NCBI GenBank assembly: GCA_002269645.1
Contig: NIVC01000815.1
Span: 376,083 to 440,082 of the forward strand
DNA length: 64,000 bases
Direction of reading: 5' to 3'
DNA from: Macrostomum lignano
Taxonomy: Eukaryota
Both the position numbers and the translations under genes were made by a program. Of this stretch, positions 12,521 to 45,233 are shown one piece after another (positions within the stretch are counted from its first letter, which is position 1; the number at the start of each line of letters is the position of its first letter). The notes beneath the pieces were generated by a model. The model saw only the letters and a program-made list of their open reading frames with translations, had not been told where the DNA came from and did no database searches.

Positions 12521-15500
12521 CTACCCGGCACTCTCGCCAGCCTCCCCGCCTTCAACTGCACCAGCTGAAGGCTCAGACTGCTGCTCACCAGGTGGTGCCG
12601 ACTTCTCAATCAGTCCGGCTGACTCGCTGCTCTCAGCCCACGGCTGCAGCTCGCCAGAAGAGCAGAACAGATAGAATAGCGAGGTGGCCACGTGGACCAG
12701 GGCTGCGATGAAGAACACCAGCTGCCACTCGCCGGCTGTGCCGTGTCGAGTCACTGCGCTGGCCACGATGGGAGACAGGACGCCTGTGCGGTTTCAGGGT
12801 GGGGGGTTATAGCGGCTGAGTTGATCAGGCTGCGTATGCTCTATACGGATTATTCCTTTTGCACACATCAGATTGCTAATTAAGGACTTCTTAGAAGATA
12901 ACGCAGGGGAGGGGCTACGGCTCTTTTAAAGAAGACGCTCCAGTACATGCATTTAGCCTCTTGGGCAGGACATCTGCCTACCTACCAAAAGAGACAGGTG
13001 CGCCCACCTATACATGTAAATCCGTGCATCCGACGTCAGACGTTCCCGACATCGTGCGACGTCCATTGCAAATTTTTATTTTTATACCTTACACAGACGT
13101 TCACCCGACGTTAGTAAAAAGTATTTAGGACGGCAGGAATAACAAAAAATAATCAGAAGTACTCGATTGGTCATCGTAGGATGATGGATACACCTGTCAA
13201 TCAGTGGAACATGTATAGCTACGAGCTACATGTAAAGCGCGATCAAGTAGAGCTCGGGACCAAACCCGAGACACTTTATCCAAGTCCCTCTCTTGTAGGG
13301 TTTTCAGCCGACTTTTCCGACAATTTATCGATTGCATTCAGTAGCCCTCCCTCTGTTTCATTTGCCAACCAACAAAGTTCGACAGTCTGGCGCTCACCTG
13401 ACACGGTGCCAACACCATTGGAGATGCCCATCAGGAATCCAGCGAATCTGGGCGCAATGTCCAAATGGTTGACGCCGTAGCCGGACATGCCAATCCCCGT
13501 GAAGCCCAAGCCTATGGTCAGGAAGGCTGTGGACAGGTAGAGATTGCGCGAGATGCCCACAACAACTAGGCAGGCCGCCATTACGCCGAACCCGACAGTG
13601 TTGAATAGACGACGCGTCGCCGTGGTGGACAGGAACTTGCGACGAACGCAGTCGGCAAGGGTGCCACCTGCAATTTTCAGGGAGAGTTTAAGATCCATTT
13701 AGCATACTTGCGGGAGTATTTTTATAGTATTTTTCTAGGATTGTTACGAAAGACGCTAATTTAGGTTGGGTTTAGTTTGCTTAATAGAGGAAAGGCAGAC
13801 TCAAGGATGAGGGAACGGAGAGACTGACTCAAGGATGAGGGAACGGAGAGACTGACTCAAGGATGAGGGAACGGAGAGACTGACTCAAGGATGAGGGAAC
13901 GGAGAGACTGACTCAAGGATGAGGGAACGGGGAGGCTGACTCAAGGATGAGGGAACGGAGAGACTGACTCAAGGATGAGGGAACGGAGAGACTGACTCAA
14001 GGATGAGGGAACGGAGAGACTGACTCAAGGATGAGGGAACGGAGAGACTGACTCAAGGATGAGGGAACGGAGAGGCTGACTCAATGATGAGGGAACGGAG
14101 AGGCTGACTCAAGGATGAGGGAACGGGGAGGCTGACTCAAGTATGAAGGAAAAGAGAGGCTGACTCAAAGATGAGAGAACGGGGAGGCTGACTCAAGTAT
14201 GAAGGAACAGAGAGGCAGACTCAAGGATGATTAATCTAATTGCCTCGCAATATTGTTATCGATTTGTTCTTAGTGAGTGAGTTATATTCTAACATAAATG
14301 TACATCTTGGTTTGCATAATTCATGTACATCGTATTGTTCACTTTTAGAACCTCAAATATATAATCGCTAACTTGGCCAGTTTGGGCCTCACGTTTTTTC
14401 TCGCTCAGCTTAAACCGCAGTCTTCAGACTTTACAATGAAGGAAGACTCAAGGATGATAAAGGAACGGAGAAGCAGACTTAAGGATGAGGGAACGGAGAG
14501 GCTGACTCATGGATGAGGGAACGGGGAGAGGCTGACTCATGGATGAGGGAACGGAGAGGCTGACTCAATGATGAGGGAACGGGGAGAGGCTGACTCAAGG
14601 ATGAGGGAACGGGGAGGCTGACTCAAGGATGAGGGAACGGAGAGGCTGACTCATGGATGAGGGAACGGAGAGGCTGACTCAAGGATGAGGGAACGGGGAG
14701 GCTGACTCAAGGATGAGGGAACGGATAGGCTGACTCAAGGATGAGGTAACGGAGAGGCTGACTCAAGGATGAGGGAACGGAGAGGCTGACTCATGGATGA
14801 GGGAACGGAGAGGCTGACTCAATGATGAGGGAACGGGGAGAGGCTGACTCAAGGATGAGGGAACGGGGAGGCTGACTCAAGGATGAGGGAACGGAGAGGC
14901 TGACTCATGGATGAGGGAACGGAGAGGCTGACTCAAGGATGAGGGAACGGGGAGGCTGACTCAAGGATGAGGGAACGGATAGGCTGACTCAAGGATGAGG
15001 TAACGGAGAGGCAGAATCAAGGGCTGAGCTGGAGAGCGAGTTAAGAAGCAAATTTTAGAAAGGTTGAAAACTTATTATAATAGTATATCTAAAAGCAATT
15101 GAAAAGCTTGAATAAAATGGACAGAACTGAAAGCAGACTTTGAACTGGGCATTTCTTGAAAAGCTTTAAAAAGAACGCACCAACTGGCGTGAGCCCGGCC
15201 ATGAGCAGGAACGGAATCATTAAATAAATTCCAACCTCCTCGCTATTCAAATCGAACACTCGCGAGAAATAGGCCGGCAGGCCGATCATGCTGAACTGGA
15301 AGCTCCAGTTGCGCCCGACGTTGGCAAATACGATGGCCCATACGGGCAGCGACCTGACCATCGCTGCGCAAGGCACCTGGCCTGTAGCTGTGGCTGGCAC
15401 GCTGCTGCTCTCAATGTAGGCCAGCTCCTCCGGGCTGATGTAGGGATCGGTTGCCGGCCTAGAGTGCACGATGAGGAACCAGGCAACCGCCCAGGCGCAG

Positions 15501-16150
15501 CCGAGCGCCCCAAAGATGTAAAAATTCACTGGCCAGCCCAGATTGGTGGTGACGGCGCCGCAGAGCGGCAGGCCAACAATGGGCCCGAGGGCCATGCCGA
15601 AGAAGGAAATCGTCACTAGTTTGGATCGCTCCATCTCGGGCGCCCAGAATCGCCAGATGCCGTGAACGGAAGGATAGAGGCAGCCCTCGGCCATGCCCTG
15701 CAGCAGCCGGATGGTGAGGGTGACGCCGAATGCGGCGGACGGCACCTCCAGATGAGCGGCCGTCGGCACGGCAATGTTCAATAGGCAGGTGATCAGCACG
15801 GAGCTTCCCAAGAGCATGTTTGGCTCCAGGTAGGACGACATGAAGCCAGCCGGTATGCTGAACAAAGCGTAGCCGATAAAAAATGAAGCCTCAATGATGC
15901 CAATGTCCAGGTGATCCCAGGCCACCTCCTGAACCAGCTCGATTTTGTAGTAGGTGTGATTCCGAGCGGTCATCTCCACCTTCTCCGGTTGCTTTTTGGT
16001 CATCTTGATAATGGCGATGCCCATCTCTGAGCGCATCGCCAGCACCACCATGAGGCCGAGGCAGCTGAGCCACGCCACTACGTAGCGCTTCCAGCCGGGG
16101 CCGGTGCAGCGGCCTTCAGCTATGCCGACGCCCGCCGATTTGCCCGACAT
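12521..16150 (-). CDS. VGLUT-like: SLC17 family MFS anion transporter, vesicular glutamate transporter-like (~500 aa)
   Basis: Exons 16150-15181, 13667-13398, 12783-12521 (1503 nt, phases consistent). Motifs QGMAEGCLYPSVHGIWRFWAP..ERSKL, VNHLDIAPRFAG.LMGISNGVGT and EWQLVF.IAALVH...SGELQPWAE match VGLUT/SLC17A6-8. Start codon uncertain; 16150 is the first in-frame ATG. Confidence 0.9.
13797..14230. repeat. 28-bp minisatellite, block 1, SLC17 intron 1
   Basis: Unit GACTCAAGGATGAGGGAACGGAGAG(A/G)CT. Confidence 0.97.
14445..15020. repeat. 28-bp minisatellite, block 2, SLC17 intron 1
   Basis: Same unit as 13797-14230, separated from it by ~210 bp of unique AT-rich sequence. Confidence 0.97.
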
Positions 16151-17343
16151 TTGTCTTCGTTTTTCGCTTCCGCTCCGTCCAAGGCCGATGCCGCTGCCTC
16201 CTCTGCTGTCCCAGATGACGTCGGAGTCGTCTGCGTCGCTATTGTCGCTAGAGCCGGTTGAAGGCACCGGTTGGTGAGTCGCTGCTGTCGCTGCCGCCGC
16301 CGCCGCTGCGGGAGTGCCTCTACGATGGCTGATCGTCTTGCTCTACGCGGTCGGGAGTTCTTCCGTCTGGAATTTTCTGCGCTCTAACGAATCTGTAGAT
16401 TCAGTGCAACAGTTTCCAGTGAGGCCAATATATGCCTGAATTTAGTACGGAAATGGAAAGAGACCGACAGTGGGAAGAAAAATCAAGCAACCCGCGTGTG
16501 CAATTCCTTACAATTCTGACAGTGAGAGATCAAGTTATAGGGAAGGAAATTGCAGGGTTAGTGGTCTCTTAGACTTGCGTTGGAAATATTTGCGCTTGAA
16601 TTTTTTATGTAGGCGTACGTCTCAACGCTGAACCGGACGAGTGGGTAGGAAAGATCGGTTTCGGTGTAGAGCTGGCCGGGTATTGCAGCAGGAATTGGAG
16701 CACTATAAAGCTCAACTGAGCGAGTTCTGTATAGGGGCTTGAGCAACAACGGATTAGAAGCACGGATGTACAGTTCTTCCACTCCATTCAACTGGAGTTT
16801 GTCGCCTCGGTGTGCCATTTTAAGGGAGAGGGGGAGAGAAATACTAGGAAAAGAAAAGAGAAAAGTATACCAAACTTCTCGATCCCCATTGACTCTAACA
16901 TTTTGCAAGGAGGCCCATATATGAAGGCGAATTGATTTGGGTTAAATTCTATACAGACGAAAAATTATATAAAGCTCCTGCTGCTACGGAAGGACAAAAT
17001 TTTACAGAGCGGCATGGCGACTGACGATTGTGGCAACAGCTGGCAGCTGTTGCTCGCAGAGGGGCGCGTGTATAACAAGGTACATGTATTAATAATGTCC
17101 GTATATGTACACTATATATACCTCAATGCTCAAAAGGCAAATTACACTCTAATCATACACAAGTGTATTGTACATGTCGTAGCTTTAAATTCCTGCGCTG
17201 AGCACTCAAATCAAGGATTTGTCATTACTTTGCTCAATAAATGCGTGTAGCTACGAACGTGCGTACGTACTTACTGTCTTTGTTTACCGAAATTCCCAGT
17301 TTTTGTTTTTTTGCGCACACTCGGACGGAAATTAATTATTGAA

Positions 17344-20801: not shown

Positions 20802-21647
20802 ATGTCGGACAGCCGCCTCATCGCCACAGTCTACGCTTCTAACGCCGGTCGCACTCCGGCCGTGAAAAAGCAGAAAGCCCTGCTGACAGAGAGCGCCGAG
20901 AAGCGCTTCACGGTCGACGGCAAGTCCCGGTCAGTCTGGCTGGATCCGCCTGCCGGGGAGAAGGTGGAGATTTGGAAGGAGTACTTTGGCGACGATGGAG
21001 AGTGCAACAGAGCTCTGGGCAGGCTGCCCGGCACTGACAAGTGTGAGTCAGCTGTGTGTGGGTCATGGAGCAGCTGTGCTCAGCACTGACAAGTGTGAGT
21101 CTGCTGTGTGTGGGTCATGGAGCAGCTGCGCTCAGCACTGACAAGTGTGAGTCTGCTGTGTGTGGGTCATGGAGCAGCTGCGCTCAGCACTGACAAGTGT
21201 GAGTCTGCTGTGTGTGGGTCATGGAGCAGCTGTGCTCAGCACTGACAAGTGTGAGTCTGCTGTGTGTGGGTCATGGAGCAGCTGTGCTCAGCACTGGCAA
21301 GTGTGAGTCTGCTGTGTGTGGGTCATGGAGCAGCTGCGCTCAGCACTGGCAAGTGTGAGTCTGCTGTGTGTGGGTCATGGAGCAGCTGTGCTCAACACTG
21401 ACAACATGACAACTGAATTTGTTGCGTGCTGGGTCTTAGCGGAGCCAAGATTGAATGTTTTTTGTCCCCATCAAACCAGAGTTTGCTGAGGAACAATCTT
21501 TTTCAACTATCTTTCAACTCAGACGGCTACATCCTGAGAGACGAGATCGATGAAGAAGGCCAGTTTGCGCCCAAGGAGGAGCAGGAAGCCTACAATGACA
21601 GCCTCCAATTGCTGACCATGTTCATGGACATCTACGGCAACGATTGA
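20802..21647 (+). CDS. Unknown 121-aa protein Y2
   Basis: join(20802-21042, 21523-21647): GTGAGT donor phase 1, pyrimidine-rich acceptor ...CTTTCAACTCAG phase 1. Product MSDSRLIATVY...GRLPGTDKYGYILRDEIDEEGQF...DIYGND. Conserved paralog at 5292-5535. Confidence 0.8.
21032..21400. repeat. 52-bp minisatellite, 7 copies, reverse complement of the 1-5302 array; intron of Y2
   Basis: Unit CACTGACAAGTGTGAGTCTGCTGTGTGTGGGTCATGGAGCAGCTGTGCTCAG. Confidence 0.98.
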
Positions 21648-28600: not shown

Positions 28601-29127
28601 CTCCTTCCCTTACTTTCCACTCCAGGGAGTCCATTTCCAGGGAGTTCAGAATTGGCAGCGCGCGGCCGTTGTTGACTCGTGCTAGATCGATTCGGTATAT
28701 GATTGGTTGTCGTTGTCATTTCATGGGTGTTTAGAACACAAATCAGTGGGGCCAATCTCCTCTCCTATTGGTGTGAAGGCCGTTGGCTCTAAGAAAAGCC
28801 AAGTGGGAGAGCCGGTTTAGTCACCCACTACCTGACCATGAACTCTATTTCGGAAGGCGTCCCACTACAGAAATAGCTAGCACCTTTGCTGGTTCACTGA
28901 GTGTTTTTTGCAATAGTCTGAAATCGAGCTTTATTACACGATTGCTACACAAAAATACGCCATACTGCATATGATTCTCGCGAGGGGTTTCGGCAAAAAA
29001 GTAAATGCTAATGCATTTGAATGTATGTAGTCACGTCCGTGTGGCATAAATGAATTTGCGCCAATGGAAAGATAGTGCACGGCTTGCAAGTGCAACAACG
29101 CCTAGGACCACGAGTGCGCGTGTCTCT

Positions 29128-30004
29128 ATTATCATATAGACTAGCCAACAGTGGCTATTCATTTTTGTCTATGGCAATTTGCAAAGAACAGGGTTGAGGG
29201 AGGCAAGGAACATCTTTCTCTCCACTACAGCGCGATATTTTTTCGTCTCAGTGTGCGTTCATTTGAAAACATGATTCATCTGTCTCAATTCCCGGACAAT
29301 TGCATAACCGGCTTGACTACGGCGGAAATCGAGAAGCATGTAGAGCTCATGGACAGAAATTCGTTGATCGAGCGGACGATGTTCGATGATGAGCCGCTCC
29401 TACCTACTCTTCGTTAGCTACTTAACAAATGGCAAGCGCAAGGCGAGCGAACTGGGCAAGATGTCCGACGCGTTGTCAGCATCGCTGTATGGAGCCAGTT
29501 CGTCTTCTGCGACCAACGATAAGTCTGTGGCTATCGTCGGACCATCTGGCGATATGGATTCGGCGGGGGATGCTACGTCTATCTCCGAGGTCCCAAAGCG
29601 GGTGGCAAGTGTTGGAATGACGACGTCAGTCCAAAATGTCAAGGTTGACGTTCAAGCATCTTCGGCCGATACTGTTCGACCGGAGCTACATATTCATCTG
29701 AGTGGTAGTTTCAGCAATTGCAACTTCAAATTCGGTGATCAGTGAGTACTGATGAATACTGAGTGAGTTACTGAGTTTTCGAGTTACTATTTGAGCACTG
29801 ACTACTAGACAAAGAGCTCGTTAAAAATGTTCAAATATTTGCTACGTTTGCTTTTCGTAAAATATAAAGTTTGTGTTGTTGCATTCTTGCACGCTGAAAG
29901 CCGCCAGCGTGCATTTTTGGCGCATTATTGCACCCTAATTGTCAATTGTCTATGGTAAAATCTCCATTATTTTGACTCACTTGTTGGCTAAACTATATGA
30001 TAAT
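29128..30004. mobile_element. TIR-bounded non-autonomous element with an internal ORF remnant (29386-29745)
   Basis: Left end ATTATCATATAGACTAGCCAACAG; right end reverse complement ATTATCATATAGTTTAGCCAACAAG. No TSD seen. Confidence 0.65.
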
Positions 30005-30458
30005 GCAATTTCATCTGAACTTGCTGTGCCAACGAACTCGGGCCATAAAAGGAGCACATTGCTATCTTATGTGGCAGGTTTTCTGGCTACGTAAACACGG
30101 CTTGCATTCCACGAAGCGGCCTTGGCAGGGCGAAGGGCTGTGCAGAGAAAGACAATGCAAAGAAAGATGGCTAACAGCAGCTGTAGTCAATGCCCCCCTC
30201 CCTATGCTTGAGAAGCGCCCAGCGGTGACAATTGAAAAAGCGGTAAAAATTTTTTATTGCACTTGGCCTAAAGACTCAAAAGAAAGCAGCCGCTCGTGAA
30301 GGCCATTGAGAAAACAGAAAAAAACAACTTGCGGAAAAACGTGCTGAGTTTATCTGCATAAATGCGAGACGCCTAAGAGAGCAGAACTCAACCAACAGCA
30401 AACGAGATATCTCTCAGCTTCTCAGCTTCATCAGGCTACACAACTCAACCAAGCAAGC

Positions 30459-30484
30459 ATGAGATGGCAGTTCGTTCTCGGACT
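30459..30484 (+). pseudogene. Truncated paralog of the secreted cationic peptide gene (MRWQFVLG then minisatellite)
   Basis: ATGAGATGGCAGTTCGTTCTCGGACT matches 31757-31782; ~450 bp upstream is also duplicated; the frame runs into a 10-bp repeat. Confidence 0.8.
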
Positions 30485-30915
30485 GGAACAGACTGGCACA
30501 GACCGGCACAGACAGGCACATACTGGCACACACTGGCACAGACTGGCACAGACTAGCACAGACTAGCACAGACAGGCACAGACAGGCACACACTGGCACA
30601 GACTGGCACAGACTAGCACAGACAGGCACAGACAGGCGCACACTGGCACAGACTGGCACAGACAGGCACAGACAGGCACAGACAGGCACACACTAGCACA
30701 GACTGGCACAGACTGGCACAGACAGGCACAGACAGGCACAGACAGGCACACACTGGCACAGACTGGCACAGACTAGCACAGACAGGCACAGACAGGCACA
30801 CACTGGCACAGACTGGCACAAACTGGCACAGACAGGCACAGACAGGCACAGGCAGGCACAGATTGGCACAGACTGTCACAGACTGGCACAGACAGGCACA
30901 GACAGGCACAGACTG
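30485..30915. repeat. 10-bp minisatellite GCACAGAC(T/A)G interrupting the peptide paralog
   Basis: About 43 units of (G/A)GCACA(G/C)AC(T/A). Confidence 0.97.
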
Positions 30916-31654
30916 CTGCTTTCCTAGCTGCCCTTAGGTAGCTGCTGCAGAAGTGACAATGTACCATATCACCCTGTTGAGGCTGGAAAGCCAATGCTTT
31001 GGCTTTGTATTTATCGTGTGACAGCTCCATGGAACTGATGACCGTGGTCTCCCACAATGCATTGAGGCAGGGTGCCCTCAGCTCTTGCATTCGTACAGGT
31101 AAAAAACTCAATAAAATAGGAGCATTATATCGTACCAAGGTTAATACGATTATGAGATCCGTTCGTAATTCAGACTGGAAACTGAACTGCAAAAGCGATA
31201 AGCAAATCATAAAGGAATTCAATTCGATAGGAAATTTCCGAGCAGAACCAGTCGAAGCAGATTGAATCGAATCAGATTGCAGTTCCATGCAGTTCTTCTC
31301 AGTAAGCATCAATAATGCAGTGCAATTTCATCTGAACTTGCAGTGCCAACGAACTCGAGGCCATAATAAGAGCAAATTGCTATCTTATGTGGCAGGTTTT
31401 CTGGCTACGTAAATACGGCTTTTATTCCACGAAACTTTGCAGGGAAATACAATGCCAAAATGGCTAACAGTAGCTGCGGTCAATGCCACTCTATGCTTGA
31501 GAAGTGCCCAATTATGATAATTGCAACAGCGTTCAAAGATATGAAAGCAATTTCATTGTTCTTGACCTGAGTCTAAAAGAGAGCAGCCGCTCGTGAAGGC
31601 CATTGCGAAAACAGAAAAAGAACAACTTGCGGAAAAACGTGCCGAGTTTCTCTG

Positions 31655-31662
31655 CATAAATA
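31655..31662 (+). promoter_or_regulatory. Possible TATA-like box of the peptide gene
   Basis: CATAAATA about 100 bp upstream of ATG 31757; GCATAAAT is retained in the duplicated copy near 30357. Confidence 0.3.
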
Positions 31663-31756
31663 TGAGACGCCTGAGAGAGCAGAACTCAACCAACAGCAAA
31701 CGAGATATCTCTCAGCTTCTCAGCTTCATCAGACTACACAACTCAACCAAGCAAGC

Positions 31757-32032
31757 ATGAGGTGGCAGTTCGTTCTCGGACTCCTGCTGTGCGCAGCTCT
31801 GGCCGTCGCCAGACCCAGCCAGGAGATGTCGGAGGAGGACGCGGAGTCGATGGCGGCTCTGGAGGCTCTGGCTGACATGGACGAGCCGGAGATGACGGAC
31901 GAGAAGGCTGCTGAGCTGCAGAAGAAGTGGCGCATCAGATTCCGTCGCATCCGCATCAGGTGGAGGCGGGTGTACCGCGTGGTTCGCACTGCCTACAGGA
32001 TCTACCGCCACTTGCCGTTCCCAGGCAAGTAG
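31757..32032 (+). CDS. Secreted prepro cationic peptide, putative antimicrobial peptide precursor (91 aa, single exon)
   Basis: Hydrophobic signal MRWQFVLGLLLCAALAVA, acidic pro-region, KK site, Arg/Trp-rich WRIRFRRIRIRWRRVYRVVRTAYRIYRHLPFP, terminal GK. GC-rich codon usage like the other exons in the window. Confidence 0.85.
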   Translation: MRWQFVLGLLLCAALAVARPSQEMSEEDAESMAALEALADMDEPEMTDEKAAELQKKWRIRFRRIRIRWRRVYRVVRTAYRIYRHLPFPGK

Positions 32033-33229
32033 GCCGCAGGTGCTCCGCTGCACCGACTGACCTCGGACACGGACCGGACTCTGCCCACCACTGCCGTCTT
32101 GATTTGCTGATGTTGATGTACCGTATTTCCACGCTCAGAGTACTTCTTAAATTATATTTCTAATTATTTTTTAATTAGAAAAGTATACAACGGAAAAACA
32201 TTATTCATTTATCACACTTCATATTCTTGTCTTCCTTTGATTGAAATATTGATCAAAGTGGTCAAAATCGCCATGTCACTCACAATTTCATGGTAAAAAT
32301 AGTCTTCCGATGGGCGGGACTCAGAGTGCTACTGAGCCGCAGTGAAAATTGAGTGCATTTTGGATCATGTGGGAAGTTATACTTATTTTATTTGTGCTTC
32401 GTTAAAGTCCTGGTTGGCTGATGCTGGAAATGTAAAAACCCCTAGTTTTGATTGAAACATCCTATACATCTTTGAATATTTTTATAGTCATGACCGTTGT
32501 CAACTGGATTCTTATTGCATTTTGTTAAATTGTGTGCACCCAAGCTTCAAGTGTTTCGAAGAATTAGGCATCGAAAAATTTGTCAAGAGTGGGGATGGCG
32601 TCTTCCTCGTGCGGTTTTTTTATAGAAAAAATGAGTGGAAAAAGGCTCGACACTTCACTGCAGCATAAAGTTTTGTTCTGAAAGCACCTTTAATTGCATC
32701 TGGACGCAAAGCTTATATAAACCCAGCGTCCCAGAGTCACTTGCGTCGCCCCCAGAGTCTTTTCAGAGTCTTTGTAGGTAACGCAGGTAAAATAGGAAAG
32801 AAGTGACTCTAAATGACTTTAAGACAACGATATACGAGTATGTAACAGTGAAAGTCGCCCAAAAGTCGTCAAAGAGTTGCGACTCTCAAACGACACTGCA
32901 TGGGACGACGCAAGAGACTTTGGGGCGCTTCTATAATGTCTCTGGGGCCATAGAGTCGTATCTGAGGCGTGCTGGAGTCGCTTTAGAATAACTGAGTTGC
33001 GTCTAAAGCGCATCTGCATCAATTTATGAATTTGAATCGCATCTCGCATTTCTAACAACTCTGTTTAGTCTACTTGAGTTAGTAGAAAGTTAAGCGCTAA
33101 CACAACGACTGTTGGACGACTTGTTTTCGTGACTTTTCGCTTCATATGGGATTTCGTGCAATTTCGGGGTTCAGACTTTGGACTATGCTTTAACTACGAT
33201 TAATTTGTTGAAGCTGGCTTAAGGGTCGT

Positions 33230-34262
33230 TTACATTGCCATCAAATCAAGTCGGTCACACGGCTTGTATACATAGTTTGTCGTCACTTTGACCATATCTC
33301 GTGTGATCCAACGGCTCATTTTATGGCACTGTAAACGAGTCTTTAGGACACTGACCCTGTCACCAGCTAGGAGACAAATGGTCTTGTTGATTCCGCAGGC
33401 ACAGACTCGCACAGGGTGTGCAGCGGTCCTGGCTTTCCGATCGTCAGGAGTGCACACTCTGTGCTAATTTGAGGCCATTTGAGGCAATTTGTTGCGGCCA
33501 CACGCGGAAACAAACCCGGCCTGGAGAGTCGAACGCGTTACCGCTGAGCTGCTCTGTCGCAAAGGCTCTCTATTACAGTGTAATGTTTTAATTATCGGAT
33601 TACAACTGGAACTTCCCAAACCTGTCGCAGTCGGGAAGAAACTCTTAAACTGTACTTCTTAATCGGGCAGCTGTTGATCGACACGTCACCACCGCTTTCT
33701 CTCGAGCCATAGCTGCGATGCTAAGAATGACAGGCGCTCGATATCACCTAGCAGCTTAGCTAGTGGCTCCTGACTGAGCAGCCATGTCTAGAGAAGTCCT
33801 ATGCAAAGGCCTAACAGGCTTATAATATTTCTGCCTCACTATACTCTATTAAAAATAAACAAAGGAGGTCATATAACATCACTAATTTCATGCAGCCTCT
33901 CCTGGTTCTTGAACTGAATTCCCGACTGTCCCAACTTTTCCTGGCCGGCCGAGCCCTATCGGAGACTGACAAAAGTGCAGTTCCAACAGATGTATAGCCA
34001 GAGGATTTTGCACTTTTCTTACAGTGCACACTGTGGCATCAGATAGCGAATTGCAAGCGAGTTGAGTTGCAATTCGATCATCGAACATGGCGATGCGTCG
34101 TAAAGCTGAGATGCGAGGGGCGCAGATCAGGCATCTAAATCTCTTTATCGGAAGTCCCCGCTGCCACGCAGGCCTTCCTCCGTTTCCTCCCATTCCGGAA
34201 AATACTTCGCATCGGTATAAAGGACTGGAATCCCGACATGACAGGTTTCAGCGCGTCGTTTT
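33230..34262 (-). mobile_element. Highly decayed non-LTR (CR1/L2-like) reverse transcriptase remnant
   Basis: Fragments PRISALRRIAMFDDRIATQL, GYTSVGTALLSVSD and VMLYDL resemble RPIS..IAKIFERI / STETALL / LLDLSAAF; many lesions. Confidence 0.45.
33500..33552 (-). mobile_element. tRNA-derived SINE-like head fragment
   Basis: Minus strand AGCTCAGCGGTAACGCGTTCGACTCTCCAGGCCGGGTTTGTTTCC has A-box-like and degenerate B-box-like motifs; no complete cloverleaf. Confidence 0.35.
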
Positions 34263-34449
34263 TGTTGTGGGTTGATGGCTTTGCCATAGACATTTTTGTT
34301 ACGCGACTGCGTTGATGAATTGAACCATGCTATTGAGTTATGAAATAAATAATAGACGCGTCAGAGGTCAGCAGACCGCTAGACTGACAATTGCTAAAGG
34401 CTAAAAGCCAAAAGCACAACAGTGGCGTCGGCAAGCATAGGCTACGAAA

Positions 34450-35598
34450 ATGCCTGGAAGTACGCCAGCATCGCCAACTAAAGGAGTTGGTAAAACGGTT
34501 TCGAGCGACAAAGCACCACCGCTTGCGATCTCGTCGAAATCAGTCCAAGCGACAAAGTCGGCAACAGCGACAGCGCAGAACCCAAGCGCACAAGTATCGA
34601 GAGGACAGCAAGTTGACATCGAAAAACTCGATGAAAGTTCGAACTTCCAGAGGTGGTTGGACCGATTCACACTGTGCAGCGAACTCAACGGCTGGCAGGA
34701 CGACACGAAAAACAAGCTGCTGCTGATGAAGCTCAGCACCAAGCTGTACGACGCATTGGCAGATCGAGCCGCTCCCAAGAAGCCGGGAGAAAAGAGCTTC
34801 GATGAACTGACCAAACTACTGGCCAGCATCCTGGAACCAAAGACGTTCGTCATGGCTGAGAGATTCAATTTCCAGCATATCACTCGCACGGCATCAATGA
34901 GCATTCGTGAGTATGCACAGCAACTCTGCATGCAGGCAGACAAGTGTCAGTTTGGCCTATCCAGAGATGAGAGACTGAGAGATCAGCTCGTATTCGGTTT
35001 GAATGACAAGGTTGCCATCAGCAAGTTATTGGAACAGGACTTCAGCACTCTCACGTTTGAGACAGCTATCAACATCGCTGAGGCGCACCAGAACCTATCA
35101 CAAACGCAAATACTAAAGGGTTGCACCAGTCAGCCGCAGTCTTCTGAAGTAATGAAAATTTCAGCATCGGTGACCAGAGGCTCCCATTCTACAAGCTCCA
35201 AGTGTGGCAGATGTGGCACAATGCATGGCTCCAATGGAGGGTGTCCTGCGAAAGGAAAAACGTGCAACAAATGTGGCATGCAAAACCACTTCGCAACAGT
35301 TTGCAAAACGAAATCAACTGGTTTTGGCAAAGGCCGAAAATCGTTCAAAAGCCCGTCAGCATCTGGTCAATTTAGGCGAGCTGCAGTGTGCCCAAGGACC
35401 ACAAGCTTTGTAGATGCAAGCGAAGCTGAACAGGAGGATTGTTTTCACATTCGACATCCCGTTGATAGCTACACCGTGCCTGTTAGGCTCAGACACACGA
35501 GCGGGTCGATGCTTAGCGTGAACGCACAAATCGATACTGGGGCAGGAGTTTCGGTAATGTCAAAAACGATCTGGAAACGATTGGGTTGTCCAAACTGA
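34450..35598 (+). CDS. Gag (double Cys/His knuckle) and N-terminal half of aspartic protease
   Basis: CGRCGTMH..CPAKGKTCNKCGMQNHFATVC; QIDTGAGVS protease motif. Confidence 0.9.
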   Translation: MPGSTPASPTKGVGKTVSSDKAPPLAISSKSVQATKSATATAQNPSAQVSRGQQVDIEKLDESSNFQRWLDRFTLCSELNGWQDDTKNKLLLMKLSTKLYDALADRAAPKKPGEKSFDELTKLLASILEPKTFVMAERFNFQHITRTASMSIREYAQQLCMQADKCQFGLSRDERLRDQLVFGLNDKVAISKLLEQDFSTLTFETAINIAEAHQNLSQTQILKGCTSQPQSSEVMKISASVTRGSHSTSSKCGRCGTMHGSNGGCPAKGKTCNKCGMQNHFATVCKTKSTGFGKGRKSFKSPSASGQFRRAAVCPRTTSFVDASEAEQEDCFHIRHPVDSYTVPVRLRHTSGSMLSVNAQIDTGAGVSVMSKTIWKRLGCPN

Positions 35599-36452
35599 CA
35601 CCTACAGACACTGTTCTGACAACATACGCTGATACGCAGATGAAGGTCTTTGGAACACACGACACTGAGTTGGAGTACAATGACGAGTTCATTCCAATCA
35701 CATTCTTCATTGTGGAATCGCAGAGGAACTTTGTTCTGGTTGGCCGAGACAAGCTCAATTTCACGCTAAACGCTGTAGACAACAGCTGCACATCGGCAAC
35801 CCAGTCATGCGAATTTCCACCAGTAACTCTTAAGATCAAGGAAGGAACCACTCCAATTCATTGCAAACCCAGGCCGCTACCCTTCGCACTCAGACAGGGA
35901 GTCAAGGATGAAATCGATCGGTTGCTTGAAGAAGACACCATCAAGCCCGTCAAGTTCAGTGAATGGGCCTCACCAATTGTCGTGGTCAAGAAACCTTCTG
36001 GAAAGCTCAGACTTTGCGTCGACTACAAGGTGACAATCAATTCTCATCTTATCAACGATTCAAATCCGATGCCTGCACCTGACGAAGTGATTGCAACTGC
36101 TGCTGGCAGCCGGATATACACTCGTCTGGACCTAGAGAAAGCTTATCACCAGATCCCACTAGATGAAGCTTCCAAAGAGCTGACAGTAATGTCAACACCA
36201 TTTGGGATGTTCGCTTTCAACAAGCTTCCGTTCGGAGTGAAATCAGCACCTGCGATCTTCCAGCGGTACATTAGCCAAGTCCTACAAGGAATTCCTGGCG
36301 TCATTGCCTACGTAGACGACATATTGATATGCGGCAAAGGCGTAGAACAATTGGCAGTTCGTGAGACGGAAGTATTGCATCGACTAAACCAGCAAGGATT
36401 GAGATCAACACGGCGAAAAGTGAATTCCGCAAGACTTCGATCAAGTTTCTAG
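35586..36452 (+). CDS. Pol segment: protease C-terminus and reverse transcriptase
   Basis: SEWASPIVVVKK, RLCVDYK, KLDL-like RLDLEKAYHQ, LPFGVKSAPAIFQ, AYVDDILI. Confidence 0.9.
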   Translation: MSKLTPTDTVLTTYADTQMKVFGTHDTELEYNDEFIPITFFIVESQRNFVLVGRDKLNFTLNAVDNSCTSATQSCEFPPVTLKIKEGTTPIHCKPRPLPFALRQGVKDEIDRLLEEDTIKPVKFSEWASPIVVVKKPSGKLRLCVDYKVTINSHLINDSNPMPAPDEVIATAAGSRIYTRLDLEKAYHQIPLDEASKELTVMSTPFGMFAFNKLPFGVKSAPAIFQRYISQVLQGIPGVIAYVDDILICGKGVEQLAVRETEVLHRLNQQGLRSTRRKVNSARLRSSF

Positions 36453-36460
36453 GCTACTTA

Positions 36461-38407
36461 TTGGAAGGAGATCAGCTCAAGCCGGACCCAGCCAAAGTGA
36501 AGGCAATCCAGGACATGACACCACCGCAGAACGTTGGCGAGCTTGAATCTTTCCTGGGTCTCGTAAATTTTAGCGGCAAGTTCATCAGAAACCTAGCTGC
36601 ACTGACCAAGCCTCTCAATCGACTAAGAAAGAAAAATGAGGACTTCGTGTGGACAAAGGAGTGTCAAATAGCATTTGACGAAATCAAGGTCACTCTCTCT
36701 GATCAATCGAGTCTTCAAATATTTGATCCGGAGAAGCCCATTGAACTGGAATGCGACAGTTCTCAGCGAGCTCTGGGCGGAGTGTTGACACAAAGCGGTC
36801 AATTCGTGCTGTACATGAGCAAGACTCTGTCTGACGCCGAAACAAAATATTCGCAAATAGAGCGTGAAGGCCTGGCACTGGTTTGGTGCATTCAAAGATG
36901 CCATCGGTTCTTGTATGGCCGGAGGTTCACACTGATAACTGATCACCGGCCCCTCACATACATATTCGCGCCAGACAAACAGCTGCCCACCAGAGTTTCA
37001 GCTCGACTACAACGATGGGCAATCATGCTAGCTGCTTATGACTATGTCATACAGTATCGACCATCAAAGCTAATGCTGTCGGATGCGCTATCTCGACTGG
37101 TGCCCGCTAAGCTGAATGCACAGACAGCATCGATCGGACTCCTCGAAGCTGACAACCCGGGAGTAATTCAGCTGGATCGCATTGCACACGCAACCAGAGA
37201 GGACCCGGAGTTCAGATGCCTGGGCGCAGCCATAATTAACAATAATCTATTTGACGACCCACACCTACTCAGCTACTCGAAGGTTCAAGATGAGCTAACT
37301 GTCAATGATGGAATTATTTACAGAATGAACAGAATTTTATTGCCTCGTGTCCTGAGAGAAACTGCCCTGGCAGCTGTACACTCAACGCACCTTGGGGTTG
37401 AAAAGTCAAAGTCAATTTTGAGGGAACAGTTCTGGTGGCCACAGATGGACCGTGACATCGCTGACTACATTGGACGATGCAACGTGTGCAACGCGTACAA
37501 GTCCAGAAATAAGAACTTTCGGCACTCGTGGCCAGAACCTGACAACCCCTGGGAGCGAGTGCACATTGATTTTGCCGGTCCGATAGAGGGCAAGTACCTA
37601 CTCATCATTGTGGATGCGCACTCGAGCTACCCGGAAGTCTTCATCACGAGCGACATGAAGGCCGACACAGTCATTTCCAGACTTAGAAGATTGTTCTCAC
37701 AACAGGGGGTGCCCAAGTGTCTCGTGTCAGACAACGGCCCTAGTTTTGTGAGCGAAGCGGTGACCGGCTGGCTCACCCAGATTGGCTGTTCGCACATCAC
37801 AACGCCCGCCTACCATCCACAGAGCAACGGCATTGCAGAGCGAATGGTGCGAACCGTCAAAGAGACAATCAAGACCAATGGTTTATCCCAAAGAAGTATT
37901 GACAGATTTCTACTGTTCTACAGAGCTGCCAAAGGGAAGCAGCAAGCATCACCGTCCGAGTTGTTGAACGGCAGACAAATAAGACTCCCCATCTCGGAGA
38001 GCAGCACTCAGTCCAAGTGGATCCCAGAAGAATCACTCATCTACCGTGCATCGAGTTCTCATGAGCCACGAACTGTGAGATTCGCCAAAATGCTTGGCAG
38101 CAACACAGCAGTCGTCACCACAGAGACTGGACGAAATCTAAAGACCCACCTCGATCAACTACGAATCGGTGAGGTACCTGAGGCTCACGGAACTACGGAA
38201 ATGGGGGATTCCAAGCCCGGTGGCAACGGTCCAAGTGACGACGGCCAACAGACGCGTCCGTCATCGACAGACACTGAGATACTACCGGGAACAGAACAAG
38301 CTGAGAGAGCACAACAGCAACAGACTGAGGTTGGAGTTCAATCCAAGCCGTCACCCAGGCGAAGCGAACGCTTGGCCAAGAAAACTAGAATTTTTTATCG
38401 CACCTGA
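36461..38407 (+). CDS. Pol segment: RT thumb, RNase H, integrase
   Basis: LECDSSQRALGGVL, YSQIEREGLA, HHCC zinc finger (HSTHLG..CNVC), HIDFAGP, VSDNGPSF, NGIAERMVR. Confidence 0.9.
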   Translation: MEGDQLKPDPAKVKAIQDMTPPQNVGELESFLGLVNFSGKFIRNLAALTKPLNRLRKKNEDFVWTKECQIAFDEIKVTLSDQSSLQIFDPEKPIELECDSSQRALGGVLTQSGQFVLYMSKTLSDAETKYSQIEREGLALVWCIQRCHRFLYGRRFTLITDHRPLTYIFAPDKQLPTRVSARLQRWAIMLAAYDYVIQYRPSKLMLSDALSRLVPAKLNAQTASIGLLEADNPGVIQLDRIAHATREDPEFRCLGAAIINNNLFDDPHLLSYSKVQDELTVNDGIIYRMNRILLPRVLRETALAAVHSTHLGVEKSKSILREQFWWPQMDRDIADYIGRCNVCNAYKSRNKNFRHSWPEPDNPWERVHIDFAGPIEGKYLLIIVDAHSSYPEVFITSDMKADTVISRLRRLFSQQGVPKCLVSDNGPSFVSEAVTGWLTQIGCSHITTPAYHPQSNGIAERMVRTVKETIKTNGLSQRSIDRFLLFYRAAKGKQQASPSELLNGRQIRLPISESSTQSKWIPEESLIYRASSSHEPRTVRFAKMLGSNTAVVTTETGRNLKTHLDQLRIGEVPEAHGTTEMGDSKPGGNGPSDDGQQTRPSSTDTEILPGTEQAERAQQQQTEVGVQSKPSPRRSERLAKKTRIFYRT

Positions 38408-39543
38408 GTGATAATTGTACACCTACCTATAGAAGAGGGAGGGTGTTGTGGGTTGATGGCTTTTCCATAGACATTTTTGTTACGCGACTGCGTTGATGAA
38501 TTGAACCATGCTATTGAGTTATGAAATAAATAATAGACGCGTCAGAGGTCAGCAGACCGCTAGACTGACAATTGCTAAAGGCTAAAAGCCAAAAGCACAA
38601 CAGTTTTCTCGGACACTTTTCTTCACCAAACGGTAAAAGGTTTCGACGGATGAAGTTCCCAACGGCTGAAAGCATGTATGCCTTGTATGTAGTCAGTCCG
38701 GACTTAAGAAGCTTTGACAGTCGAATTGCAACTGACTGGCTTAAGTGCTGGGAAAAGGCGTGTGTTAAAATTGTCTCTCGCGCCGAGACTTCACACCCTG
38801 TTTCTTGTTCAAAGCCGAATCAGGCACAGCGATGCACAGCTGATGAGATAAGGCCAGTTGTTCCGCAAACTCAACACCTCACGTCGCACCTTGTCTTACC
38901 AGATACGCGGTAGGTCAAGTTTCAAAGTGAAAGCTGGTTGCTTGAAACATTTTCTAAGCCTTTATCGGTTTGATATAAACATAATCTGTTGAATAGCATA
39001 CTCATAATTACGAGCTCGTAAGCTCATTTAGTCACTGAGAACTTAATCCAGTTCACTACAACTACAATTTGAAAACGTTTTAGAAATTATGGGCAACCCT
39101 GACGAAACGCCTTCACGGCGAAATCAATCCCACAGCCAGCACCGAGGCAATTCTGGACATTTCTCTGACTCCTGAGCAAATGCAAGCGCGCCAATACTGT
39201 ACACAGGCACTCGTGCATGTACACACGCTCAAACAGGATGTAAAGTGGCCCAAGGCAGACTATCAACAGTGGTACACTGACCAATCATCAAGCCATCCAA
39301 TGGCAAAGAGAACATTCTTTTCAACTCTCCAATTGCAATCTCGTATTGGCCTCAGCCAATAGCATTTGGAGGACGGATTTCACATTCGTCTTTCTACTTT
39401 AGGCGTCAAACTCTACATGTGCCATATGCAATAAGCCGCCACTAATTATGCATCAAGTGCACAAAGCTTCAATAAGCCTGCTTCGTACAAGTTGCGGCAC
39501 TATAAATAGAAATTGCTGCTACTGGAAAAATCAGAGGACAGCA

Positions 39544-42500: not shown

Positions 42501-45233
42501 GCGGCGCCAGGGAGTTTCTTCTCATCACCTCGGCGACGCTCGACAGGGAGTTGATCGCCGAGCACCTGCTGCGAGTCGCCTGTTGGACTGACAGCGACGC
42601 AACGACAACGAAGTTGACAGCAACAGCAACGCTAACCGTGGCTGTCACCGACGAGAACGACTGCGCGCCGGAGTTCGCGGCGCCGGCCTACACCGGCCGC
42701 GTGGCGGAGAACTCGCCGCTGGGCCGCGCTGTCGAGCTTCATCCGCTGCCCAGACTGACAGCCGTGGACAGAGACGCCGCACCCAACAACCGTGTCGCCT
42801 ATCGACTCGGCGGTAAAGACGCTTCGGCGTTCAGCGTCGAGGAGCGCAGTGGAGAGCTGCGAGTGTCTTCAGTCTTGGACTTTGAGGAGCGCAGCAGGCC
42901 GTTCAGCTTCCGCGCTCTGGCCGTCGATCCAGCCAGCAACGCGACCGCCATCGCCGAAGCGAGCATAGTCATTAAAGTGGTCGATGCTAACGACAACGCG
43001 CCGATCATTTTGCCGGGCAGGCGGCGATTCCGTCTGGATCCGACGGCGCCAGCTGGCAGCCTCGTCGGCCAACTCGAAGCCGCCGATGCAGACGGCGATC
43101 CTCGGAACCGGCGCCTGCGCTTCAGCATTGTCCGACAGACGGGCAGCGGAGACGCGACGATGACATCGATGATAGCGCGGCGCTATTTTGAGGTTCACCC
43201 GAGCACCGGGGAGATCCGGCTGGCTGCGCCGTTCAGAGACGCCGCCTCATCTGCGGAGGCTCGCCAGTTCCGTTTCCGGGTGCGTGTCGACAATGAGCTG
43301 CCGCTGGAGCACGGCACCGGATATTCACCGGCTTCAGTTGCCGAGATTTGCATCGATGTCGGTCGGCCGTCATCGTCTCCTCCTCCGATGTTTTCAACGC
43401 CGCCGGTACCGGAGCTTCCTCCACGACTGTGCCGGCTGCCGCACGCTGTCCCCGAGCGCGGATGCGTGGAGCCGCCCGACCCTCTGCCTGTCGATCTCGT
43501 CAACGATGCGGTGGTCGACGCGGATGGCCGGTTGGTCTGCGCAGTGCTGAGCTACGGAGTCGCGTCGCTGGCTGGCGGCAGCTTTGAGGCGACATTCGGT
43601 GAGCCACAGCCGCTTCAGCCAGACAGCTCTCACGGCGAGCTTCACTTCGAGCTGCCACCAGACAAAGGAAGTCAACGCATCTGTCTTCGGCGACTTCCTC
43701 CAAAGAGTTCCTCCGCTGCACAGGGCGAGCTGGAGGTCAAGACTTTCCTGCTGCCGATGCGGCTGATAAATCGCGCGGTTTCTGTGGATTCCGCGGGGCG
43801 GACCTACCGGCTGCTCGTCACGGCCGCCTTGCGGCAGCGCCGGCGGCAGCCAGCGGGGTGGGGAGCGGCGTCCGCCAGCCGAAGCGGCAGCCGCAAGCTG
43901 GTCTTCGCCGTCGCCGTTGCAACCCTGTGCGTGGGTGTCGGCGTTGTTCTGATCACAGCGATCGCCCTGACCGGCTTCGCCGTGGCTTGCGCGCGGCGGC
44001 TACGGGTGCAGCAGCAGCGCGAGGACGGAGCGGGTGAGTGCGCGAGAGCTTCTTGCTTGATGTGGCGCTTCATGAGATTCCATGGGATTATCCATTAGAA
44101 TCGATGATATTCAATAAGATTATCCATTAGAATCGATGAGATTCAATAAGATTATCCATTAGAATCGATGATATTCAATAAGATTATCCATTAGAATCGA
44201 AGAGATTCCGTGAGATTATCAATTAGAATCGATGAGATTCAATAAGATTATCAATTAGAATCGTTGAGATTCCACGAGTTTATCCATTAGAATCAATGAG
44301 ATTCCATGAGATTTTCAGTTAGAATTGATGAGATTCCATGAGATTATCAATTAGAATCGTTGAGATTCCACGAGTTTATCCATAAGAATCAATGAGATTC
44401 CATGAGGTTATCAGTTAGAATCGATGAGATTCCATAAGATTATCAATTAGAATCGTTGAGATTCCACGAGTTTATCCATTAGAATCGATGAGATTCCATG
44501 AGATTATCAATTAGAATCGTTGAGATTCCACGAGTTTATCCATAAGAATCAATGAGATTCCATGAGATTATCAGTTAGAATCGATGAGATTCCATGAGAT
44601 TATCAATTAGAATCGTTGAGATTCCACAAGTTTATCCATTAGAATCGATGAGATTCCATGAGATTATCAATTAGAATCGTTGAGATTCCACAAGTTTATC
44701 CATTAGAATCGATGAGATTCCATGAGATTATCAGTTAGAATCGTTGAGATTCCACAAGTTTATCCATTAGAATCGATGAGATTCCATGAGATTATCAGTT
44801 AGAATCGATGAGATTCCATGATATTATCCATTAGAATCGATGAGATTGCATAAGAATCAATGACATTCCATGAGATTATCAATTAGAATCGATGAGATTC
44901 CATGAGATTATCAATTAGAATCGTTGAGATTCCACGAGTTTATCCATAAGAATCAATGAGATTCCATGAGATTATCAGTTAGAATCGATGAGATTCCATG
45001 AGAATCATCTGATATTTTCAATGAGAATCGGAGATTACGTTAGATCATTGACTTTCATTCACCCTGTGGCGTGTTTATGCAAGAGAACTGCAATGATTTC
45101 AGAGCAACAAGCATATTATACTATTGGAGAACAGCCGATGGGTCACGCTGCCAGCACAGATGAATTCTCCAGCTCAGTGAACGGAACCGTGAGTGCAAAA
45201 GCTGTTCCCCACAACAGTTTGCGAGTAAGATAA
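39544..45233 (+). CDS. Protocadherin-like membrane protein (about 6 cadherin repeats, TM, short tail; ~1024 aa)
   Basis: join(39544-39933, 40164-40690, 41118-41561, 42451-44033, 45103-45233), phases consistent. Signal peptide, EC1 LDREALCG, DVNDNPP/DENDCAP/DANDNAP linkers, DRE/DYE/DFE motifs, TM KLVFAVAVATLCVGVGVVLITAIAL. The last exon is less certain. Confidence 0.88.
40737..41000 (+). mobile_element. CORE-SINE-like element in protocadherin intron 2
   Basis: Degenerate tRNA-like head followed by GTGTCCTTAAGTGAGACACTTTACTCTGCATTGCTTCAGTTCACCCAGCTGTAAATGGG (40799-40858), resembling the MIR-type CORE domain as I recall it. Confidence 0.55.
44075..45003. repeat. 32-bp minisatellite, protocadherin intron 4
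   Basis: Unit GAGATTCCATGAGATTATCAATTAGAATCGAT. Confidence 0.96.

Follow-up and report, generated by a model that had tools for sequence, protein, structure and literature searches.

The subject of this report is a peptide gene of the flatworm Macrostomum lignano, located in a stretch of 64,000 nucleotides (GenBank assembly GCA_002269645.1, contig NIVC01000815.1, positions 376,083 to 440,082 of the forward strand) that we call the window. At positions 31757-32032 of its forward strand, the window carries an intronless open reading frame (ORF), with an ATG at 31757 and a stop codon at 32030-32032, encoding a 91-residue precursor (MRWQFVLGLLLCAALAVARPSQEMSEEDAESMAALEALADMDEPEMTDEKAAELQKKWRIRFRRIRIRWRRVYRVVRTAYRIYRHLPFPGK). 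This ORF is an expressed single-exon M. lignano gene, more than a chance frame, and it belongs to a large family of paralogs. Judged from the sequence features of the family, we consider it somewhat better than an even chance that the product is a secreted, Lys-site-processed, C-terminally amidated and membrane-active defence peptide. This reading is favoured because of five features that occur together: a prepro region that is conserved, a cationic and amphipathic tail that is hypervariable, a retained C-terminal Gly, charge-matched pro-pieces, and tandem clusters with signs of birth-and-death evolution. The same five-part signature is shared by host-defence families such as the amphibian skin peptides and the arminins, and extends to the pro-piece charge balance of the defensins. 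Here, we describe the gene and its family, compare the precursor with known defence peptides, and weigh the alternative explanations.

The gene and its paralogs

The precursor is composed of MRWQFVLGLLLCAALAVA, RPSQEMSEEDAESMAALEALADMDEPEMTDEKAAELQ, KK, WRIRFRRIRIRWRRVYRVVRTAYRIYRHLPFP and GK, in this order (18 + 37 + KK + 32 + GK). An earlier reading of the window, made from the sequence only, had described an 18-residue hydrophobic signal, a 37-residue pro-piece holding 13 Asp or Glu residues, a KK site, and a 32-residue tail with 12 Arg, no Asp or Glu and no Cys, followed by a terminal Gly-Lys. All of these counts were reproduced in our recount, and the coding sequence (CDS) is free of introns in this gene, as that reading had stated, and in every family gene fetched. 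The gene is organized as follows:

31631-31641 (+): promoter box GGAAAAACGTG, with the family consensus GGAAA[AC]ACG[TA]G, conserved upstream of nine family genes
31656-31661 (+): TATA box ATAAAT, about 96-101 bp before the ATG, invariant in 9/9 aligned promoters
31690-31756 (+): putative 5′ untranslated region (5′UTR), minimum extent, highly conserved among paralogs; the translated 5′UTR of the partial paralog model P0004 aligns to window 31690-31797
31757-31810 (+): signal peptide of 18 residues, MRWQFVLGLLLCAALAVA, ending in A-V-A, with n/h/c organization and A-x-A before the presumed cut; the next segment starts at 31811
31811-31921 (+): anionic pro-piece RPSQEMSEEDAESMAALEALADMDEPEMTDEKAAELQ, 37 residues with 13 Asp or Glu
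31922-31927 (+): Lys-Lys junction, a presumed processing site, with Lys at P1 in 22/22 members
31928-32023 (+): cationic 32-residue tail WRIRFRRIRIRWRRVYRVVRTAYRIYRHLPFP, net charge +12
32024-32032 (+): Gly-Lys and stop codon, with Gly as presumed amidation donor and Lys as presumably trimmable
32033-32130 (+): conserved 3′UTR segment; in blastn, window 31628-32128 aligns at 88 % to a paralog at 9873-10365 of GenBank contig NIVC01001664.1 (L001)

The exact cut point of the signal peptide is predicted by the -3/-1 rule. No canonical AATAAA was seen in the 3′ region of the gene.

A protein search matched the ORF, at 100 % identity, to the last 91 residues of the GenBank protein BOX15_Mlig001477g4. 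This model is chimeric (139 residues), with a first exon-like piece of an upstream paralog joined to the 5′UTR of the window gene. The exact 91-residue product has no database record, because GenBank holds the chimeric model instead. The GenBank models for this assembly were built solely from transcripts derived from RNA sequencing and ORFs called by TransDecoder (PMC5730564), and the annotation itself is therefore indirect evidence of transcription. Furthermore, the CDS forms a GC island, with a GC content of 0.63 overall and 0.84 at third codon positions (GC3) versus 0.41-0.46 in the flanks. Contig NIVC01001664.1, to which the window is 96-99 % identical, represents another allele or a homeolog; across 531 bp around the gene, the two versions differ at 6 sites, 0/6 of which lie inside the 276-bp CDS.

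The signal peptide and pro-piece are under purifying selection, with ratios of nonsynonymous to synonymous differences (pN/pS) of 0.22-0.35 among paralogs. Pooled over five intact paralogs of the window subfamily, pN/pS comes to 0.35 in the signal and pro-piece together and to 0.62 in the tail. In the same comparison, pN is 0.232 in the tail versus 0.066 in the prepro region (a 3.5x difference), and every indel falls in the tail. The pro-piece alone has a pN/pS of 0.33, and the pooled pN of the signal peptide is 0.015.

A first, exhaustive profile search of 1.84 billion representative proteins returned nine matches, none outside the family: eight are M. lignano proteins and the ninth is encoded on a 929-bp contig assembled from run SRR31628392. 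Upon a second profile search, the family grew to at least 27 clusters at 90 % identity. The family is thus large and restricted to M. lignano records, save for the one SRR31628392 contig. All family genes fetched are single-exon, several are arranged in tandem or as head-to-head pairs, and precursors like that of the window gene have 88-95 residues. Among other resources, no Pfam match of the window protein passed the threshold (the hit to HCMV_UL124, with E=0.1, is noise), the PDB gave no match to the tail and one meaningless match to the family profile (E=0.05), and Rfam gave no matches within the 64-kb window. A Pfam hit of the paralog P0019 to PF22991 (27.1 bits, with a cutoff of 27) was rejected as spurious, as it lies on a duplicated acidic 17-mer. 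Two models of the older ML2 assembly, P0005 (UniProt A0A1I8JEL3, 634 residues) and P0027 (A0A1I8G6Q8), fuse a family member to unrelated sequence. They are called 'Sushi domain-containing' and 'SERPIN domain-containing', names that probably arose as annotation artefacts and could mislead any naming of the family by homology.

The locus itself differs in gene content between the two assembled versions. About 25 kb present in NIVC01001664.1 is absent from the window, where positions 29069-30002 correspond to L001 8156-33061. This extra segment carries two more intact paralogs (88 and 95 residues) and two degenerate copies, one with a 1-bp frameshift in the signal peptide and the other clearly dead, having lost its ATG and acquired a stop codon and a frameshift. 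It further holds a non-LTR-type (long terminal repeat) reverse-transcriptase ORF and other repeats. Given this structural difference, the copy number of the peptide-gene cluster varies between alleles, homeologs or assemblies. Upstream of the window gene lies a relic of the same family:

30333-30915 (+): truncated paralog stub with intact promoter box and TATA box (30333-30363), a 5′UTR, an ATG at 30459 and 8 family codons

After codon 8, the body of the stub is replaced by a 10-bp microsatellite, GACTGGCACA, repeated 43.5 times (30481-30915), leaving an ORF of 35 residues. One such stub is found in the window and two are found in the GenBank allele. The stub may still be transcribed, because its promoter box and TATA box are intact.

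For nine family genes, some of them from subfamilies that share only 45-57 % protein identity, 260 bp of upstream sequence were aligned to compare the promoters. In this alignment, the conserved box sits roughly 12-20 bp upstream of the TATA box. The combination box-N(8-24)-ATAAAT matches at family promoters only, both in the 64-kb window and in 8/10 fetched loci, where 0 matches are expected by chance; the P0012 loci (L007/L008) have no exact match to it. The partial transcript-derived model P0004 starts at the equivalent of window position 31690, about 30 bp past the TATA box. The sharing of the box and TATA box across the family suggests co-regulation, with a putative regulatory function for the box.

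Tail variation, processing and charge balance

At the N-terminal end of the precursors, an alignment of 12 members shows no variation at the signal residues M1, Q4, L7-C12, L15, A16 and A18, with the family consensus M-[RK]-W-Q-x-x-L-G-L-L-L-C-x-x-L-A. A check by signal-peptide prediction had been proposed for the window gene; in the pipeline published by Irvine et al. 2023, SignalP 4.1 was positive both for this gene and for its paralogs. At the other end, the tail is hypervariable across the family, with lengths of 6-37 residues and the following forms:

Arg-rich tails of 18-37 residues, like that of the window gene
Pro-Arg repeat tails, (RLPRVR)n
two-Cys tails
Arg/His/Tyr-rich tails
many tails of 8-10 residues in strict hydrophobic/Arg alternation, such as FVRVRVRL-G, IFRVRVRI-G, WLRVRARVRI-G and IFRVHVRF-G
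His tails of 6-7 residues, FIHIHF-G and GFHVHFH-G

The contig from run SRR31628392 (L005) encodes a Pro-Arg repeat tail (RLPRVRMPRVRLPRVRLPRLRVRFRW) that recalls proline-rich antimicrobial peptides (AMPs), and carries the same promoter box and TATA box.

Two features flanking the tail are kept in most members. The junction with the pro-piece had been read as a dibasic site, which applies to most members (KK or KKK, with Lys always last) and fails in three subfamilies, where E-K or L-K is found. The proposed amidation signal stood up better: a C-terminal G, GK or GKR is kept in 19/22 otherwise hypervariable tails, which argues for amidation. Together with the known specificity of peptidylglycine alpha-amidating enzymes, this conserved Gly makes C-terminal amidation a reasonable prediction.

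The charges of the pro-piece and tail vary together. Among 22 members, the net charge of the pro-piece correlates with that of the tail at a Spearman rho of -0.86, and the means of nine subfamilies give a rho of -0.89 (p=0.0015). The idea that the pro-piece neutralizes the tail predicts such covariation; masking would be the role that this covariation points to.

The window tail has two amphipathic parts, as had been proposed: a beta-strand-like first half and a helix-like second half. Both hydrophobic-moment peaks are significant, with residues 1-15 peaking at 150-160 degrees (hydrophobic moment muH 1.05, permutation p=0.007) and residues 13-28 at 100-105 degrees (muH 0.93, permutation p=0.002). 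The AlphaFold2 (AF2) model is of modest confidence, with a pLDDT of 67 for the whole precursor and about 80 for residues 51-80; it places helices at residues 3-17 in the signal peptide and at residues 26-40 in the pro-piece.

Taken in order, these features suggest the following mechanism. Transcription would be driven by the TATA promoter and the family-specific upstream box, both of which are conserved. The 18-residue signal peptide, called by SignalP and invariant at key positions in the family, would direct the precursor into the secretory pathway and then be cleaved off. In transit, the acidic pro-piece may mask the Arg-rich tail, with which its charge has apparently co-evolved. A protease would then cut after the conserved Lys(-Lys), upon which a carboxypeptidase could trim the terminal Lys, so that the exposed Gly is converted into a C-terminal amide. 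The freed cationic amphipathic peptide would act on microbial membranes, as its physicochemistry and the evolutionary pattern of the family suggest. The effector could be the full 32-mer or shorter products released at the internal RFRR and RWRR sites.

Arminins, other defence peptides and earlier literature

The closest likeness to a known precursor is to the arminins of Hydra, although the hosts belong to different phyla (Platyhelminthes for the window family, Cnidaria for the arminins). Antimicrobial activity of arminins has been shown experimentally (PMC6217004, referring to Augustin 2009), and the arminin 1a-C peptide is KPWRFRRAIRRVRWRKVAPYIPFVVKTVGKK-NH2 (PMC6217004). Arminins 1a and 1c (ARM1A_HYDVU and ARM1C_HYDVU) are 88-residue precursors with an 18-residue signal, an acidic pro-piece of about 39 residues and a cationic tail of about 31 residues, a three-part geometry near-identical to that of the window precursor, and both are multigene families. 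The WRFRR-like arminin motif that the sequence-only reading had mentioned is genuine, as the published arminin sequences confirm. Both arminin 1a and the window tail begin with W-R and have in common the pattern W-R-x-R-R...R-x-R-W-R-[KR]-V, with RFRR at an equal offset, while the C-terminus reads ...VGKK in arminin and ...PGK in the window precursor.

Without gaps, WRFRRAIRRVRWRKV and WRIRFRRIRIRWRRV are identical at 8/15 residues. Smith-Waterman alignments of seven family tails with arminin 1a-C lie 2.2-5.6 z units above composition-matched shuffles, and the hhalign comparison of the family with the arminin profile gives a collinear match (probability 77.6 %, P 1.9e-5). The arminin profile score was reached by 1/400 shuffles that preserve the three-segment architecture. 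When this signal is broken down, the similarity of the pro-piece proves purely compositional (z 0.37), the signal-peptide term reflects generic signal-peptide order, and the remainder is a short tail motif (z ~3, 1/150). Weighing against homology, BMAP-27 (one of 12 unrelated cationic control peptides) also scores z=3.0 against the tail. BLASTP of the family against the arminins is non-significant (E=6), and the profile hidden Markov model search of 1.84 billion proteins retrieved no arminins. The family thus appears to resemble the arminins beyond composition, in layout and in a tail motif; that the two are true homologues seems to us distinctly unlikely. In a weaker variant, the common core may be a convergently optimal membrane-active motif.

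In evolutionary pattern, the family also resembles the skin peptide precursors of amphibians. Dermaseptin and temporin precursors have a conserved signal and acidic spacer, a basic site (usually K-R) and a hypervariable cationic amphipathic peptide, often ending in Gly(-Lys); they form large species-specific paralog sets, and their peptides are Lys-rich helices. The same pattern is measured here among the Macrostomum paralogs. The Macrostomum family differs in its junction (K-K or x-K) and in its Arg-rich tails, which often alternate in a beta-type manner, and it has no known sequence relationship to the amphibian precursors. In their short form, the tails resemble designed beta-sheet AMPs. 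These are synthetic peptides of the types (IRIK)2-NH2 and (IRVK)n-NH2; Bac2A, in turn, is a linear derivative of bactenecin. On physicochemical comparison, IFRVRVRI-G, FVRVRVRL-G and WLRVRARVRI-G are like the (IRIK)2-NH2 and (IRVK)n-NH2 types in length, in strict hydrophobic/basic alternation and in being amide precursors. Aligned with the window peptide, Bac2A scores no better than chance (z=0.0).

Three further candidate families were rejected. Cathelicidins require a cathelin-like pro-domain of about 100 residues with four Cys; the window pro-piece has 37 residues, no Cys and no Pfam match. Myticalins of molluscs have the order signal, cationic peptide, C-terminal anionic extension; in the window precursor, the anionic piece comes before the cationic peptide. 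In addition, flatworms have no Myticalin homologues according to Irvine et al. (PMC10414684). A protamine-like or nuclear Arg-rich protein is ruled out by the conserved signal peptide.

Two further sets of peptides are comparable. AMP1-4 of the placozoan Trichoplax owe the name 'arminin-like' to an architecture that the window family shares: besides a signal, they have an N-terminal region that is acidic, a C-terminal region that is basic, and a Gly at the C-terminus for amidation (PMC12013895). Both sets are highly paralogous and lineage-specific. AMP1-4 differ in being ~150-250 residues long and in their acidic (DE) cleavage motifs, a comparison made with their published description (PMC12013895). 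Their epithelial expression was seen by fluorescence in situ hybridization (PMC12013895). The peptides mesco-1/2/3 of Mesocestoides corti are, as far as the available part of PMC11546468 describes them, likewise computationally mined, secreted and cationic peptides of Platyhelminthes. According to the same part, mesco-2 forms a kinked helix with a GRGIGRG motif, and its sequence is unrelated to the window family.

Parts of the family have already passed through a published AMP screen. Irvine et al. 2023 (PMC10414684) applied SignalP 4.1, ProP 1.0 and 11 AMP predictors to proteomes from 35 flatworm genomes, both M. lignano assemblies among them. In their S5 File, BOX15_Mlig001477g4 is listed as 'Ungrouped' #544, with a signal peptide, 3 ProP sites and the peptide VVRTAYRIYRHLPFPGK. 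It was positive with 9/11 predictors (81.8 %), and other family members scored 73-100 % (PMC10414684). At least four paralogs are listed separately from it: Mlig008283g1 and Mlig025063g1 in the 'Same genome' group 116, and Mlig024774g1 and g2 in the 'Same genome' group 142, at 100 % (PMC10414684 S5 File). Ungrouped peptides and single-genome groups were removed from the pipeline, and therefore no member of the window family was described or prioritized for synthesis (PMC10414684). The gene had previously been called 'undescribed', which is correct in that it was never described as a family, and incorrect in that the gene is annotated in GenBank and listed as AMP-like in PMC10414684.

In the literature full text, the gene IDs and peptide strings of the family gave no matches, and in the supplements of PMC5816591, PMC5946080, PMC12896417 and PMC12732829 the sole match was the unrelated Mlig024774.g6 (PRPF19). 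The AMP-like call was thus already known. Judged by the literature searched, what is new is that the members form one large family, along with the way this family evolves, the covariation of its charges, its promoter and the comparison with arminins.

Alternative readings, genomic surroundings and significance

Several observations weigh against a membrane-active defence peptide, or against the 32-mer as its final form. The paralog statistics are based on few, non-independent sequences. AMP predictors have high false-positive rates, and Irvine et al. warn against sole reliance on them (PMC10414684); the texts and supplements searched contain no activity, tissue or infection-response data for the family. 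The uncharged His tails of 6-7 residues (FIHIHF-G and GFHVHFH-G) are atypical of membrane-lytic peptides at neutral pH, and 3/22 members lack the terminal Gly. AF2 places the entire tail in one helix, at odds with a beta-like N-terminal half. The 32-mer had been proposed as the product, and its sequence is indeed real, cationic and amphipathic; it may not be the final product, as it contains two furin-type RX[KR]R sites (RFRR and RWRR), and ProP predicted 3 cleavage sites for the window gene (Irvine et al. 2023, PMC10414684). The short-tail subfamilies are free of such internal sites.

Three rival explanations compete with the defence role. That the ORF is non-functional or an artefact, either a frame open by chance or a decaying pseudogene among repeats, is highly improbable: the region is full of minisatellites and transposons, the neighbouring paralog is a truncated stub, two copies on the GenBank allele are degenerate and the GenBank model is a chimeric 139-residue product, all of which would suit such an origin, and are set against frame-specific purifying selection, a GC3 of 0.84, a protein identical in two alleles despite differing flanks, transcript-derived models, a conserved promoter and intact paralogs at many loci. 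A signalling role is a more serious contender that we still regard as improbable; here, cleavage at basic sites and amidation of a neuropeptide or hormone precursor would release C-terminal receptor ligands such as VYRVVRTAYRIYRHLPFP-amide or the paralog peptide IFRVHVRF-amide. A signal, a basic cleavage site and a C-terminal Gly make up the canonical prohormone layout, internal RX[KR]R sites would yield short peptides, some paralog tails end RFamide-like in R-F-Gly, R-L-Gly or R-I-Gly, and amidated neuropeptides are known in Macrostomum. However, conservation in the precursor is lowest in the segment presumed to be bioactive (6-37 residues; pN 0.232 vs 0.066 in the prepro region), the opposite of what is seen in receptor-constrained neuropeptides, and its C-terminal residues vary widely (FP, PI, LL, IC, PL, RL, HI, RF, FH). 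The at least 27 divergent paralog clusters, with tandem copy-number-variable arrays and pseudogenes, also speak against it, charge matching between pro-piece and tail has no role in signalling peptides, and no named flatworm neuropeptide was matched in the searched literature.

The remaining rival, that of a secreted effector whose primary function is not antimicrobial, we consider rather unlikely. Such an effector could serve reproduction, as a reproductive or seminal-fluid peptide shaped by sexual conflict; it could be a toxin, directed against predators or acting as an allomone; or it could self-assemble within mucus or rhabdites. Fast tail evolution and family expansion are also typical of reproductive proteins and toxins. 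The strict alternation in tails such as FVRVRVRL counts in its favour as well, since strict hydrophobic/charged alternation of this type is a classic beta-sheet self-assembly motif. The matched acidic and basic segments could even form a complex after cleavage, with alternating strands pairing with the pro-piece. Many rapidly evolving reproduction-related genes of M. lignano are reported in the available part of PMC7336406. Yet the family IDs were not found in the searched portions of germline and neoblast lists, and searches of Pfam and the PDB revealed no similarity to known adhesive, toxin or seminal-fluid families. Furthermore, the conserved amidation signal and cationic amphipathicity would be most economically explained by membrane targeting, as in the favoured defence role.

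The surroundings of the gene are rich in repeats, and the other coding features recognized there have no evident functional link to the peptide gene (transporter, cadherin and Cnd2 exons below). Annotated features of the window are:

1-5256: 52-bp satellite, 101 copies at 98 % identity, filling this interval
15089-16267 (-): Major Facilitator Superfamily transporter exon (Pfam)
21031-21404: 7-copy patch of the 52-bp satellite, in reverse orientation
34450-38407 (+): Ty3/gypsy-type LTR retrotransposon, about 2.4 kb downstream of the gene, with ORFs for gag-like DUF7083, reverse transcriptase, RNase H and integrase
42551-44098 (+): cadherin repeats exon (Pfam)
59876-60532 (-): condensin complex subunit 2 (Cnd2) exon (Pfam)

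Window 34262-38603, which contains the retrotransposon, is missing from the GenBank allele, where the alignment passes directly from L001 39555 to 39551; the insertion is therefore polymorphic. The density of minisatellites is very high, with 56 Tandem Repeats Finder rows in the window (some of them overlapping descriptions of one array), periods of ~10-60 bp and many arrays of 0.3-1.2 kb.

If the peptides are antimicrobial, they would make up a major family of defence effectors, and their host, a free-living marine flatworm, is a model organism with working transgenesis (PMC5730564). The compact family-specific promoter (~130 bp) could be used as a reporter and would offer a route to the transcription factor controlling the family. 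The natural amidated alternating peptides of 8-10 residues, such as IFRVRVRI-NH2, would be cheap to synthesize and assay, and the covariation of pro-piece and tail charge would constitute a clean natural case of charge-masking co-evolution. Finally, the likeness to arminins touches on the question of whether AMP genes described as 'taxon-restricted' are truly orphan. If the two families were true homologues, arminins would no longer count as a Hydra-restricted orphan; they would represent, among cnidarians, an ancient family of eumetazoan defence peptides that are amidated and rich in Arg and Trp. Such a family, built on the W-R-x-R-R...R-W-R-[KR]-V core, would be one that evolves too fast for ordinary searches.

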